DNA of 64,000 nucleotides from Oikopleura dioica (Eukaryota > Animalia > Chordata), in the NCBI GenBank assembly GCA_907165135.1, contig OU015567.1, positions 14,508,001 to 14,572,000 on the forward strand, in the 5' to 3' direction. Position 1 is the first letter of the stretch. Each line of letters begins with the position of its first letter. The notes under the pieces were generated by a model. The model saw only the letters and a list, made by a program, of their open reading frames with translations. It was not told the origin of the DNA and searched no databases. Shown here one piece after another: positions 19,462 through 23,623 of the stretch. The position numbers and the translations under genes are program-made.

Positions 19462-22400
19462 TTAGGCATTGAAATGGAAAACTTTGATCTTCATTGGCTC
19501 TAAATCGACCTCCTTCACATTTTCCTTCCTTGTATCGAGGAGCGTCAAGCTCGTTTCTGATGCTTTTGCATTTGAAAAAACTGAAAAGTTTCGTGATTGA
19601 AAGCTCGGCGAGTAAAATTTACCGTCGAGGGAAATGGGCCAAGAGGAGTCTTCAAGAGGAAGTATTTGCGAAAGGGAGCAGTCCGATCCATAGCGACGTA
19701 GAATAAGGGCCACTGAAATATTTGGGGAACCATTCACCCTAAAATTAGGAAGTTAGCTACACAAGTTTAGTTTTGCGCTTACTTGGTGGGTCTCAAGTTG
19801 ACAAGTTTGGCATCGTGAGGCAGTGGTGCTGAGGCTTTCAACCCAGTAAAAGATGAATCCTTCGTAACTGAACCAGTCAGAATCGAGGCAAGGAAGGGAG
19901 AATGCGTGTATTCTGATAGTCTGTTCGCATACGGCGACTAAACAGTTAGGACTTGTTTCAAACGATATTCATTTACCAGATAAATCGAATCAGCAGATGT
20001 AGAAGGTGATGTTGATTCAAGAAGAAGTTTGAAAGAACCTTTTGTAATTGAGTTGTCTTTGACTGGCTGGCCCATTCCTCTGGAATCATCTTGAGCGAGA
20101 GTCCTGTCGAGCCATATCTAAGAAAAAAGGTTGAAAGTGAGCCAATTTAAGTGATTTTTAATACCTCTATTTCACCATCCCTCTGGGAGGTAACACCAGA
20201 AGATTGTTGAGTAAGGATGGTCAATCGTTTTTGATTATCTAAAAGAATTTTATATTAGATTTAACAAAAAACTTTACCTTGAATGTAAGCAGAAGAGACA
20301 ATAGGATAAACATTTCCCTGAATCGTCAGTTTATCGTAATAAACCTTCTTTGTTATCGTCAGACCATTCAAATCAGTAAACAGCGTTCTGTGATTTTGAA
20401 CATCCGAACGGACCTGCATAACCATTTCGTAATTGGTCTCGCCTCTCACATCAACGAAGGTATCAATCAAAACAGCGCCAGAACTAACGCCACATTTGAC
20501 AACAGAAAGTCGATGCATAATTCGCTCAGCGCCGACTTGTACTTCGTCGATTACAGGACCGGAAATGATTCGGTATCCGCCTTTTTTAGTTTCAAAAGAC
20601 TTACAAGAATCTAAGAGTTAGACTCTAACATAATGCTGTCTTTCAAAACTATTCCTTGATCTTGCTGACCAAAAACAGGGACAGAAAGCTTGTCCGGTGC
20701 AAATAAATACGATCCAGAATTATCCTGCGAGTTTCCTCTTCCTCTGCAGCCATATTTGGCAAATTGCAATTGTGTCGAGTGCAATCTTCCATCGATACTG
20801 ATCTCCTTGAGAAGTCCATTTTTACCGTTGAGAATTACTTTAACATTTGGCGAGACCAGTTGAGGATCTCCGCTAACTCTGCTCGTTGAAAACTTAGATT
20901 CGATGTTGCTTCCGTCTGCGGATCCTCCAAGACTTATTTTCGCAAGAGGAACCTCTTGACTTGAGCTTGGACAAAGCTTTACTCGTCTCGTCGACAAGCC
21001 ATCGACATTGACCATGAGAAGGAGCTCGAAAGAGTTGCTGTCAGAAATTCTACCTTCAAAGTGGTCGTTCTTCACAACGTCCCACCATGGATTCAGTTGA
21101 GCAAGTGGCTTGCTTCCGTCCATGTACCTTGCCGAAATTTGATTGGAGTTAACTTTCACTCTAACAAGATCTTCTGTTTTGTGCAATAAAGAGTTGAATA
21201 CATCCAAGTAAGCACACCCTTCGCCGATTTCAACCGTCTTAGCGACTGGAAGCTTCCCTCTCTCGCTCAAGTCTTCTTCCAAATAATAAGCCACGACGTT
21301 TTCTTCTGAAATAGCCGAAAGAGTTTTCGAGTATGCTTCCTTTAAGTTTTTGTATCCCGAAAGAAGGTGATCAGCATAATCCCGATGGACAAAGTCCTTC
21401 TCTGTTCCAGTGATAGCATCGTGATGCTGGAACAAATCGACCTCACGTCTTCCCGCCCGAATTTTCTTGTAAATTTCATCAGCTACATTTGAAGCAATCT
21501 TGCCGCTGATAAGACCAATAGAGAGCATTGTATCCGATGCTTGCATCAAATGCTCTAGTCGTCGATCAAACCATTTTAAAAACGGCCTCGAGTTGAAGAA
21601 TCCTGTCCAATAATTAGTAGTTCGATCTGCGTATGAGAAAAAGTCTCCCGAGATAGATGGATTTTCCGCAATCGGGCGAGCTTTATCGACCAGAGCAAAG
21701 TAATCTTTTAATGTTCCGAACTTGGCCTCAGCATTCAATGTCGGAGTATTGCTGATAAACTCAAAGAGCTTCTCGTAATTTGTAAATTGCGCTTCTGCTT
21801 CAGCATCAGAATCATATCGGAAATCGTCGCCGAGAAGAGTGAGCACAACGCGGGTGTTTTCCTTGGTTCCTTTCGCATAGAGTTTGGATTTCTTACGATA
21901 TTGATCAAGAAGAACTCTTGCTCGCTCAGCAACGTTTGTTTTTGTAATTTCCACGGGTTCTTTTCGCCATGGACAAGTGACTGGCGGCGATACTTTGCGA
22001 AGTCTTCTGAAGTCGAACTGGCAGCAAACACTTGGATCTGGTCCGCAGGTGTGCGGCACATCGTAGGAGTAGAAAGGCATCATATGCGTGAAAGTTTCGT
22101 CCGAACCAGTATTATCGAATGATTGTCGCCAGTTGAATTCGAGAATGTTTTGCTCCGCAAAATGCTTCTTTACGACGTAATGAGTGCGCTGAATGAGCAT
22201 GTGGTCGATCCCAGCGAGATGGTTCAGATAAGCTGTTGTTGGAGAAGCTCCGAAGGTATCACAATTGTAGCCGTTTTTGGGATGATAGTCGAAATGCTTC
22301 TTGAGCCACTGATGTCCCTCGATCAGTTGATCCGACATTGCGAAGTAGTGGCTAGGCGCTTCTTCCGTCATCACCCAGCCGCCCGTTACGATTTCAATTT

Positions 22401-23127
22401 GACCGCTTTTGAGAAGTGTGGTAAAACGCGACTTGTAATCTTGACTAACACTCGGGTCATCAAACCACATATTCAAGAAGACCGTTTCCGCCCAAATAAA
22501 CTTTCTGAGCGGGTTTTTGGACAAGGCGTCGACAATCACCTTCAAAATCGTTCTGGTCTGTCCCGTGTAGTAGGTATCCAATGTCTTTACCCAGCCAGGA
22601 TCGTTGTGCGAGTGTGGCATCAGAATAATCTGCAGCTTGGTGTCCATCCATTCTGCATCGGTCGATTTTATCTCCCAGCCTTGTTTCCAAACGCCCCCAT
22701 CGCGGTCAACAAAGTCCCATTCTTCATAGAACTTGTCCACGTGATAGGTTGAGCCGGAGCCTCTGTAAGGAACAGTAGCTGCGCATTGACCATTGTCGCT
22801 TTTTGGAGCGAGGATTTTCTCGAACGGGCTTTTCAGCTGCGATTGAATTTCGGACAAAACGGCATCGTCGCCATTGTTGGTCTTTTCGACGTTTATCAAG
22901 ACGTCGAGCTTCTCTTTGATAGACGAGAGGATCTTGACATTGCCTCTTGCTTCGTCCTCTAACTGCTTGATCTTTGAGTTTAGGAGGGAGATTTCGTCTT
23001 CAATTGGTGGAATCTCCCGTAGTCCCTTTTCCGTCTCTTCTTTTGCCCTCGAAAAGGCCCAGAAAGAGTAGCAGATAAAGCAAAGAACGAGGAAAAACGC
23101 GAGGACAGAAGACTTGCGAATTCTCAT
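19462..23127 (-). CDS. MAN2A: Golgi alpha-mannosidase II (GH38), type II membrane protein
   Basis: N-terminal TM helix, PHSHNDPGW, EIVTGGWVMTEEA, QRTHY, HMMPFYSYDVPHTCGPDP, LGDDFRY, YWTGFF, LFQHHDAITGT. Further 3' exons continue to ...IKVFHFNA*. Confidence 0.95.
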
Positions 23128-23330
23128 TTTGAATTATGCGTGATAGTGACTGCGATTGCGATGAAAACCCAGAGAGCGGCAAGAAGAGTGACTGGCACCA
23201 AATAACGAATCTCAGGAAACAAAACTTCTAACAAGAGATTGCCCTCGATGAAAGGGCGAACGAGAATCCACGCGGTGAAGTAAGCAAAAGTCCCGAGAGT
23301 CGTTGCATGTAAGAAATGGGCGCTACTCAT
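23124..23330 (-). CDS. DPM2: Dolichol-phosphate mannosyltransferase subunit 2
   Basis: 68 aa with two TM segments. FAYFTAWILVRPFIE...LFP..RY matches the DPM2 pattern F(T)YYTAWV..LPF...F.P..Y. Confidence 0.8.
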   Translation of the reverse strand: MSSAHFLHATTLGTFAYFTAWILVRPFIEGNLLLEVLFPEIRYLVPVTLLAALWVFIAIAVTITHNSK

Positions 23331-23623
23331 GCAAATCTGCCATTCTAGTTGTTTTTGTAAAGTATCGACTAGTACAGTACATTTCGAAGATGCAACGGAT
23401 TTTTGAGTTTAGGTAAAGTGGATTGACAGTGAAATTAAACGGGAACGAAAAAGAAATAAAATGATATTTTGAACTGAAGATGTATTTTGCATTGAAGAGT
23501 CGTTAATAAGTGGATAGGTAGATTCAAAAAATGAAGAAAGAATGAATGATTTGTTGTTTTCGAACTGGGATTTTGCGAAACAGTGAAAATGAAGAAATTT
23601 GTTTTGGAAATGAAGAAAAGAGT

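Follow-up and report, generated by a model that had tools for sequence, protein, structure and literature searches.

Overlapping DPM2 and alpha-mannosidase II genes on a spliced-leader RNA of Oikopleura dioica: a candidate for uORF-guided bicistronic translation

Introduction

In the KSHV ORF35-ORF36 mRNA, a short upstream open reading frame (uORF) in a better initiation context lies over the start of the first cistron, the first cistron contains few AUGs, and linear scanning that follows uORF termination leads to the second cistron, which overlaps the end of the first (PMC3561293). The DPM2-MAN2A locus of Oikopleura dioica, described here, shares this layout. It differs in being cellular, capped by a spliced leader (SL) and known from sequence, whereas the KSHV mRNA is viral and its mechanism was proven by mutagenesis; moreover, the ORF35 AUG is strong and the DPM2 AUG weak, and the KSHV uORF has 11 codons compared to 2–6 at this locus (PMC3561293).

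A second parallel comes from green algae, where leaky scanning serves conserved loci whose nuclear mRNAs are exclusively bicistronic and which, like DPM2-MAN2A, combine a weak Kozak context at ORF1 with few AUGs before ORF2 (PMC11892635). Unlike O. dioica, green algae have neither SL trans-splicing nor operons, and DPM2-MAN2A has a strong-context uORF, a 4-nt overlap between the ORFs and an AUG depletion that is non-significant at this single locus. A 4-nt stop/start overlap (AUGA or UAAUG) is also found in calicivirus VP1/VP2 and influenza B M1/BM2. Overlaps of these two kinds cause ribosomes to restart in caliciviruses, influenza B and some human mRNAs. In contrast to the viral pairs, DPM2-MAN2A shows no conserved TURBS motif (in an alignment inspected by eye) or structure, and its geometry shifts between lineages.

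In textbook tunicate and nematode operons, each downstream gene is freed by SL trans-splicing and translated from its own mRNA. The SL-resolved operons of Oikopleura, Ciona and nematodes resemble DPM2-MAN2A in co-transcription from the same strand, in an SL added to the first gene at AG|A and in the operon-like spacer present in an outgroup (PMC1488885, PMC7986045). In the known SL operons, however, the UTRs abut, the coding sequences are separate and an acceptor of its own serves the downstream gene, whereas DPM2-MAN2A has overlapping coding sequences and, in most C-type contigs, no AG available. We found no paper on the translation of unresolved Oikopleura mRNAs, whether described as bicistronic translation, leaky scanning or reinitiation.

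Results

The window analysed is a 64,000-nt stretch of the Okinawa lineage (assembly GCA_907165135.1, contig OU015567.1, positions 14,508,001 to 14,572,000). Reading frames are nested on its minus strand, with the uORF overlapping the start of DPM2 and the DPM2 stop overlapping the start of a mannosidase II gene, MAN2A (Table 1). The uORF reads ATG (23343-23341), GCA GAT TTG CAT GAG, TAG (23325-23323) and contains the DPM2 ATG (23330-23328) in a different frame. The distance between the DPM2 and MAN2A coding sequences is -4 nt on the same strand, which places the pair, being co-transcribed, within the spacing used to define Oikopleura operons (at most 60 bp). An earlier note on this DNA had located the uORF, DPM2, MAN2A and the ATGA overlap, and all of its coordinates hold on the minus strand. 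Its remark that no room is left for a poly(A) site or acceptor between the two genes is likewise correct, as the stop/start overlap itself shows, and no AATAAA was found near the DPM2 stop in the window sequence.

Table 1. Features of the DPM2-MAN2A locus, in positions of the window
Feature	Position	Strand	Basis or remark
SL trans-splice acceptor AG of the DPM2-MAN2A transcript	23345..23346	-	mRNA body from A 23344; in Okinawa inferred by homology with L003 and L004
uORF MADLHE*, 6 codons	23323..23343	-	sequence
DPM2 CDS, 68 codons + TGA	23124..23330	-	ORF list and Pfam PF07297
ATGA: MAN2A start codon (23127-23125) overlapping DPM2 TGA (23126-23124)	23124..23127	-	sequence
MAN2A-like (GH38) first coding exon, 838 open codons	20611..23127	-	ORF list and Pfam; 3' exon boundary approximate
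CGCAG, candidate internal acceptor	23150..23154	-	AG 23151-23150, 22 nt before the MAN2A ATG, followed by T
Conserved non-coding block TTCACTGTCAATCCACTTTACC	23412..23433	-	candidate promoter/TSS element, ~70-90 nt upstream of the acceptor

The DPM2 frame matched Pfam PF07297 with 33.4 bits (cutoff 27.3) over residues 8–61 and gave a single match in a search of the whole genome. Its orthologues are 69–96% identical, while an exact-sequence look-up of the window DPM2 returned no record. DPM2 is a small two-helix membrane protein. The MAN2A exon encodes the Glyco_hydro_38N (PF01074; 2.4e-62) and Alpha-mann_mid (PF09261; 1.6e-18) domains of Pfam, the gene is single-copy in the genome, and an orthologue is named alpha-mannosidase II at JGI. 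With its GH38 N-terminal and middle domains and an N-terminal signal anchor, the predicted product has the features of a Golgi alpha-mannosidase II. The MAN2A N-terminus, including the hydrophobic signal-anchor helix, is conserved from Met1 in all lineages, and the second Met falls past the membrane anchor, which rules out a later start. The earlier note had also joined the two genes by a shared role in N-glycan mannose metabolism; this link is loose, DPM2 being a subunit of the ER Dol-P-Man synthase and MAN2A a Golgi trimming enzyme.

RNA evidence came from two metatranscriptome contigs, L003 (lineage B) and L004 (lineage C), whose 5' ends consist of the last 23 and 22 nt of the SL, respectively. 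The SL replaces the genomic upstream sequence exactly at the homologous AG|AATGG, and both contigs are then collinear with the uORF and DPM2 and extend 1182 nt (L003) and 732 nt (L004) into MAN2A. The SL 23-mer has 53 copies in genome G000, compared to 0 for the control, and the one copy read, in contig L006, is followed by a GT donor. An SL-DPM2-MAN2A bicistronic RNA exists in lineages B and C, and the same RNA is expected in the Okinawa lineage. Both contigs are partial molecules without a poly(A) end and hold the 5' 0.7–1.2 kb of MAN2A. A further contig from the same RNA sample as L004, L017, is un-trans-spliced and also spans the DPM2-MAN2A junction; unprocessed RNA is therefore abundant enough for assembly, and L003 and L004 may themselves be intermediates of processing. 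Across the junction, RNA contigs and genome align collinearly, and a spliced alternative end of DPM2 was rejected on this ground.

We compared 16 environmental and genomic contigs from three O. dioica lineages: Okinawa (the window, L001 and L020), B and northern C-type (n=11). The last look-up for further contigs gave Tara metagenome (DNA) contigs only. The ATGA overlap (-4) was found in 13/16 contigs, spanning the Okinawa and northern lineages; lineage B has a +3-nt spacer and contig L005 a 113-nt overlap (-113). In every contig (16/16), the uORF ATG (uATG) directly follows the AG|A acceptor and lies 13 nt ahead of the DPM2 ATG, out of frame with it. Recurring in this way in independent contigs, the layout is more than chance. 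This offset is invariant, while the 8 intervening nucleotides vary, and the third-codon positions of DPM2 are only 50–56% identical between lineages. The suggestion that a 1-nt error hides a DPM2 start reading MADL is thereby refuted, as the identical offset in all 16 contigs is joined by an outgroup uORF that also overlaps DPM2 out of frame. An assembly error of 1 nt at 23325-23345 was rejected on the agreement of the 16 contigs.

The O. dioica lineages are ~25 My apart, and operons are seldom conserved in this genome (PMC11067885); DPM2 and MAN2A are fused in all lineages compared. The C-terminal length variants of DPM2 (66–69 aa) differ by whole codons, which would hold the TGA in frame, and ATGA was verified among them only for the 66-aa variant of contig L013. 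In an outgroup appendicularian (L014), a 9-codon out-of-frame uORF overlaps that species' own DPM2 ATG, and DPM2 and MAN2A are separated by an 80–100-nt spacer with AG|A sites. Given this spacer, DPM2 and MAN2A were probably a regular operon at first. Because the outgroup uORF coexists with the spacer, the uORF evolved for DPM2 and not for MAN2A. The Met-Arg (ATG AGA) at the MAN2A start is conserved and is present also in the outgroup, where no overlap exists; ATGA can thus arise trivially.

All three start codons have a uniform context across the 16 contigs. The uAUG is strong (A at -3, G at +4; 16/16), the DPM2 AUG weak (T at -3, A at +4; 16/16) and the MAN2A AUG good (A at -3; 16/16). Depending on the contig, the uORF is either one 6-codon ORF or split into MV* and MNE* (2–6 codons), and in 16/16 contigs its TAG ends 5–7 nt past the DPM2 AUG. 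DPM2 contains no internal ATG in lineages B and C and a single one in Okinawa, which is out of frame and in a weak context (23308-23306 in the window). This paucity was not significant against synonymous recoding (P 0.33–0.89), and AUG depletion was rejected as a sign of selection. The locus has the weak ORF1 context and few AUGs before ORF2 expected for leaky scanning and, in 16/16 contigs, the short stronger-context uORF over the ORF1 start, ending just past it, expected for uORF bypass. A strong uAUG, a weak DPM2 AUG and an AUG-poor DPM2 would fit either route at least as well as they fit a stop-restart chain.

Discussion

We tentatively favour, at a confidence close to evenly balanced, a reading in which DPM2 and MAN2A form one transcription unit giving an SL-capped mRNA with uORF, DPM2 and MAN2A, from which MAN2A would be translated through uORF bypass and reinitiation or through leaky scanning. 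Mannosidase II would then probably be made by ribosomes skipping or restarting past DPM2, and not from a separate mRNA. The two genes would be left together on one mRNA because neither a poly(A) site nor an acceptor would fit between them, most northern ATGA-type contigs also lacking any AG in the DPM2 ORF after codon 3. We infer each translation step from the arrangement of the reading frames. Scanning from the SL cap, ribosomes would first meet the strong-context uORF AUG, and those translating the uORF would pass over the weak DPM2 AUG lying within it. After terminating 5–7 nt past that AUG, they would scan on through ~200 nt, where at most one weak AUG occurs, before reinitiating at the AUG of MAN2A with its A at -3. 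Ribosomes leaking past the uAUG would start at DPM2 or, after a second leak, at MAN2A, and a small further contribution may come from ribosomes that restart at AUGA once DPM2 has been translated.

The content of AG dinucleotides between the genes bears on whether MAN2A could acquire a leader of its own. In 9/11 C-type contigs, there is no AG from DPM2 codon 3 to the MAN2A ATG (194 nt), where 2.7–5 would be expected (P ~0.04 to 0.002), although the depletion is only marginal, and the Okinawa lineage, with 5–6 AGs, shows no such depletion. Lacking AG after DPM2 codon 3, most northern ATGA-type contigs would therefore offer MAN2A no leader of its own. This weighs against an alternative that we consider unlikely, namely a conventional zero-spacer operon resolved by the SL, in which the MAN2A leader would be added at an AG inside the DPM2 coding sequence (CGCAG in Okinawa, TAG|A in lineage B) and the DPM2 poly(A) site would lie within the 5' end of MAN2A. 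Each pre-mRNA would then yield one mRNA or the other, and the SL-bicistronic contigs would be intermediates. O. dioica does resolve operons by adding the SL at AG sites that are unpaired (PMC6389100), and spacer-less operons are resolved in this way in Ciona and form a minor SL1 class in C. elegans (PMC1488885). Possible sites at this locus are an AG 22 nt before the MAN2A ATG in Okinawa and an acceptor-like AG|A 3 nt before it in lineage B; AATAAA occurs within the last DPM2 codons of several C-type contigs, and the outgroup spacer with its AG|A sites also suits such an operon. Against this, no candidate acceptor is conserved between lineages, and no AATAAA was found in lineage A, lineage B or contig L021.

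CGCAG, which the earlier note had proposed as a trans-splice acceptor, is present in the window, but such a role is weakened by its restriction to the Okinawa-lineage contigs (absent in B and C), by the T that follows it and by the AG-free interval of most C-type contigs; the usual base after an Oikopleura SL acceptor AG is A (PMC6389100). Among the matches listed from at least 599 stretches searched with degenerate N-terminus patterns, none had the SL joined near the MAN2A ATG, an observation of little or no weight since the same scan did not re-find L002–L004. Because de Bruijn assembly clips SL branches, an SL-MAN2A species, whether a minor or even the predominant one, could be missing from the assembled contigs.

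Less probable still is a true termination-reinitiation chain on the bicistronic mRNA, with ribosomes stepping from the uORF end back to the DPM2 AUG 5 nt upstream and from the DPM2 end to the overlapping AUGA. When the earlier note raised such a chain, it rightly anticipated a bicistronic mRNA, now seen in SL contigs of two sister lineages; the stop-restart part fares less well, as the geometry varies (-4, +3, -113) and no conserved TURBS-like motif is present. The AUGA overlap in 13/16 contigs and the DPM2 length variants differing by whole codons speak for the chain, the latter with ATGA confirmed in L013. After a 68-codon ORF, however, a tethering element is normally required, and inspection of the alignment by eye revealed no conserved motif of the UGGGA type. 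The only UGGG upstream of the junction is specific to the window (UGGGU, compared to UGGAU elsewhere), and a predicted junction stem pairing GGAUUUUCAU with AUGAGAAUCC scored no better than shuffled sequences (z-score 0 to +1) and showed no covariation. The 3-nt gap of lineage B, the long overlap of L005 and the trivial origin of ATGA from Met-Arg, shared with the non-overlapping outgroup, also count against it.

The weakest alternative, and a very improbable one, is that MAN2A is expressed chiefly from an internal promoter as a capped non-SL monocistronic mRNA starting inside or just upstream of DPM2: CAGE mapped 693 internal promoters in O. dioica operons (PMC6389100) and the DPM2 ORF minus its AUG would make an AUG-poor 5' UTR, but the ORF has no evident TCTAGA or TATA-like element and a metagenome scan with the MAN2A N-terminus gave, among the matches listed, a single genomic contig (L012), the only one to start inside DPM2 with a plausible 5' end.

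Returning to the reading of one SL-capped message for both proteins, the locus challenges the textbook account of operons: the start codon of a single-copy housekeeping enzyme gene lies inside its upstream neighbour's stop, at least one lineage lacks a usable acceptor, and in two lineages an SL-capped RNA carries both genes. By implication, some Oikopleura 'operons' may stay unresolved altogether and depend on scanning and reinitiation devices whose other known users are viruses and green algae. A bolder extension, which we regard as possible but doubtful, is that O. dioica operons include a class of obligately bicistronic cellular mRNAs, and that an ancient uORF was here co-opted as a ribosome splitter setting the DPM2:MAN2A ratio. 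If true, eIF2 or nutrient status could tune how much of an ER Dol-P-Man synthase subunit is made relative to Golgi mannosidase II from one SL-capped message, and a chordate would possess a cellular equivalent of the KSHV ORF35/36 arrangement. DPM2 and MAN2A have remained joined for ~25 My in a genome more scrambled than that of any other known animal, which offers a straightforward account of how a few gene pairs withstand scrambling. As a small natural system, the locus lends itself to testing uORF-controlled bicistronic translation in a chordate, and it cautions against annotating operons from distance alone.

The intergenic DNA upstream of the acceptor has mostly diverged, with two short blocks common to the Okinawa and C-type contigs. 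The block TTCACTGTCAATCCACTTTACC, which Okinawa and northern-lineage contigs share, lies just 3' of the start of the un-trans-spliced RNA contig L017 and may represent a promoter or TSS element. For lineage B, the best matches of the ORFs that precede DPM2 lie on another chromosome of genome G000, which suggests that DPM2 has a different upstream neighbour in that lineage.

Organization of the locus

The minus strand reads ...AACTAG|A ATG GCA GAT TTG C ATG AGT AGC..., placing the DPM2 start codon within a short upstream ORF (uORF) in a different frame, and the MAN2A start codon overlaps the DPM2 stop codon as ATGA. This layout and all the coordinates given for it in the earlier note, including that of a CGCAG inside DPM2, proved correct. 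In profile searches, the 68-aa product exceeded the Pfam DPM2 cutoff, and the 838-codon ORF contained the GH38 N-terminal and middle domains. Both genes are single-copy in the Okinawa assembly (G000; 64,281,565 bases in 19 contigs), and introns are ~45 nt in length. Because conservation of the MAN2A N-terminus extends from Met1 through the membrane anchor and the next methionine lies past the anchor, MAN2A must begin at the overlapping ATG. This first MAN2A ORF stops at TAG 20613-20611, just before a GTAAGT (window 20560-20660, minus strand); comparison with L012, a partial northern contig, suggests that the true donor lies upstream of that TAG, and it may be non-canonical.

Features of the DPM2-MAN2A locus in window coordinates
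Feature	Position	Strand	Source
BEACH/WD40 gene, upstream of DPM2	end ~23624	minus (same strand)	ORF and profile search
Non-coding block TACATCTTCAGTTCAAAA, conserved Okinawa/northern	23467-23484	minus	contig comparison
Non-coding block TTCACTGTCAATCCACTTTACC, conserved Okinawa/northern	23412-23433	minus	contig comparison
uORF (MADLHE)	ATG 23343-23341, TAG 23325-23323	minus	sequence
DPM2 ORF, 68 codons	ATG 23330-23328, TGA 23126-23124	minus	ORF list
Internal ATG, out of frame, weak context, Okinawa	23308-23306	minus	sequence
CGCAG, candidate internal acceptor	23154-23150	minus	sequence
MAN2A ORF, 838 codons	ATG 23127-23125, overlapping DPM2 TGA	minus	ORF list

Conservation of the overlap among O. 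dioica lineages

A DPM2 word search returned four clusters, whose members and contigs yielded 16 contigs with a complete DPM2: lineage A (the window, L001 and L020; Okinawa type), lineage B (L002 and L003, plus the partial L012) and lineage C (eleven contigs). Lineages B and C share 88% nucleotide identity and are each 73–75% identical to A, falling to just 50–56% at third codon positions, a pattern that fits the published tree, in which the Okinawa lineage split ~25 Mya and the northern lineages ~7 Mya (PMC11067885). The -4 ATGA overlap was present in 13 of the 16 contigs, comprising all of A and 10/11 of C. In lineage B, a 7-nt insertion creates TAG-AAA-ATG (+3) and brings the two ORFs into the same frame. 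The inserted GTAGAAA (L002:2390-2410; also in L003 and L012) is the source of both the TAG stop and an AG|A acceptor-like site; the frame runs DPM2-stop-Lys-MAN2A, and stop-codon readthrough would yield a DPM2-MAN2A fusion protein. In L005 (530-666), a single ENA contig, a deletion of 13 nt ahead of the ATGA, whether a true allele or an assembly artefact, extends the DPM2 frame at least 113 nt into MAN2A and gives a 100-aa product (P0004).

The MAN2A ORF of the northern contig L013 is broken after residue 255 by GAGCT-repeat-rich sequence (1019-1272) that looks like a lineage-specific intron and is absent from the window, L002 and L022. The JGI contig L015 (600-800) carries an isolated MAN2A N-terminal fragment (residues ~62-115) inside unrelated sequence, which may be a pseudogene piece or an exon from a lineage with rearrangement, or may reflect chimeric assembly of the contig.

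A trans-spliced RNA spanning both genes

The genome contains 53 copies of the 3'-terminal 23-mer from the spliced leader (SL), versus 0 for the reversed control, and in the one copy read (L006) a GT donor comes after the 40-nt leader. Two JGI contigs, L003 (lineage B) and L004 (lineage C), begin with the last 23 and 22 nt of the SL, respectively, joined exactly at AG|AATGG. Upstream of that point the genomic contigs L002, L013 and L005 carry sequence unrelated to the SL; L003 and L004 must be RNA-derived. Both stay collinear from the uORF across DPM2 and the junction, reaching 1182 and 732 nt, respectively, into MAN2A, and support the bicistronic mRNA postulated in the earlier note. By homology with the site joined to the SL in these contigs, the AG at 23346-23345 (minus strand) would be the SL acceptor of the unit in the window, and it agrees with the published description of acceptors in O. 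dioica as unpaired AGs, usually with A next (PMC6389100).

L017 shares its sample of origin with L004. It retains 115 nt of upstream sequence, un-trans-spliced, and likewise spans the junction. Since unprocessed RNA can assemble, L003 and L004 could be processing intermediates; the assembled contigs demonstrate the presence of bicistronic RNA in lineages B and C, not its exclusivity. In none of them was the SL joined near the MAN2A ATG, the metagenome scan being saturated and carrying no negative weight. Between the BEACH stop and the DPM2 acceptor, two short blocks (TACATCTTCAGTTCAAAA and TTCACTGTCAATCCACTTTACC) are common to Okinawa and northern contigs, the remaining spacer having diverged. 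Because L017 begins just 5' of the second block, the two may represent the promoter or transcription start site of the DPM2-MAN2A unit.

Candidate acceptor sites for MAN2A

MAN2A may receive its own leader by conventional SL resolution in the Okinawa lineage, whose DPM2 span contains 5-6 AGs, among them the CGCAG put forward earlier as a trans-splicing site. The AG of CGCAG, however, is followed by T and restricted to the Okinawa lineage, and nine of the eleven C-type contigs lack any AG from DPM2 codon 3 to the MAN2A ATG (194 nt; 181 nt in L005), making its use unlikely. In most C-type contigs (9/11), a canonical internal acceptor is, on sequence grounds, nonexistent; L013 and L023 have one AG each in that span. 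Synonymous recoding predicts 2.7-5 AGs (P ~0.04 with C-lineage codon usage, ~0.002 with Okinawa usage), the C-type contigs tested not being mutually independent. The lineage B insertion provides an AG|A site 3 nt upstream of the MAN2A ATG, and AATAAA falls within the final codons of DPM2 in several C contigs and is absent from A, B and L021. With AG and AATAAA so distributed, no processing signal is conserved between lineages.

Translation of MAN2A

Start-codon contexts are identical in all contigs: A at -3 with G at +4 for the uAUG, T at -3 with A at +4 for the DPM2 AUG, and A at -3 for the MAN2A AUG. The stretch separating the DPM2 AUG from that of MAN2A is free of ATG in lineages B and C and contains one in Okinawa. 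This scarcity would permit scanning; we do not claim selection for it, because a test against synonymous recoding did not reach significance (P 0.33-0.89). The layout is that of KSHV ORF35/36, where a short uORF in better context overlaps the ORF35 AUG; uORF-translating ribosomes skip ORF35 and reinitiate at ORF36 after further scanning, and homologues of ORF35 have at most two internal Met codons (PMC3561293). That system was dissected experimentally. Weak ORF1 context and few AUGs are also common to algal leaky-scanning bicistrons (PMC11892635). Given these likenesses, we favour a route, each translation step of which we infer, whereby uORF-translating ribosomes would bypass the DPM2 AUG, resume scanning and reinitiate at the MAN2A AUG, with leaky scanning acting beside this bypass. 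This locus combines a conserved uORF lying across the DPM2 start codon with, in one lineage, an AG-free first ORF. A literature search of incomplete coverage turned up no study of how unresolved Oikopleura mRNAs are translated.

Restart at the AUGA after DPM2 translation, one step in the stop-restart chain of the earlier note, would at most play a part. Among DPM2 proteins of 66-69 aa, lengths differ by whole codons, consistent with the TGA being kept in frame; of the 66-, 67- and 69-aa variants, the ATGA was confirmed only for the 66-aa L013. Against restart, the stop/start geometry varies (-4, +3, -113), and no conserved TURBS-like motif was seen by eye in the alignment. A predicted stem between GGAUUUUCAU in DPM2 and AUGAGAAUCC at the start of MAN2A does not exceed shuffled sequences in stability (z 0 to +1) and displays no covariation, and the ATGA itself belongs to a conserved Met-Arg (ATG AGA) present in the outgroup without any overlap there.

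A 1-nt error at the DPM2 start, which would have made it MADL, is excluded because AG|AATGG and the 13-nt offset from uATG to DPM2 ATG are unchanged in 16/16 contigs, while the intergenic DNA upstream of the acceptor has mostly diverged. The 8 nt between the two ATGs vary, and the uORF reads MADLHE*, MVFLNE* or a split MV* + MNE*.

Age of the gene pair

The outgroup appendicularian contig L014, whose MAN2A N-terminus shows 46% identity, preserves the BEACH-DPM2-MAN2A order and an out-of-frame uORF overlapping the DPM2 ATG, with a DPM2-MAN2A spacer of 80-100 nt. Gene order and spacer together indicate that the pair is old and that the spacer was lost within the O. dioica complex. The best matches of the ORFs preceding DPM2 in lineage B fall on another G000 chromosome (34-51% identity), which suggests a different upstream neighbour there, with DPM2-MAN2A still fused. 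This persistence is notable because operons are seldom conserved between these lineages (PMC11067885). In L014, the 100 nt round the MAN2A AUG (960-1060) are predicted to fold unusually stably (-30.9 kcal/mol, z -4.05), with one modelled hairpin in the spacer and another enclosing the AUG. A TYFMFFK* tail in another frame at the 3' end of its DPM2 points to a possible 1-nt frame problem.
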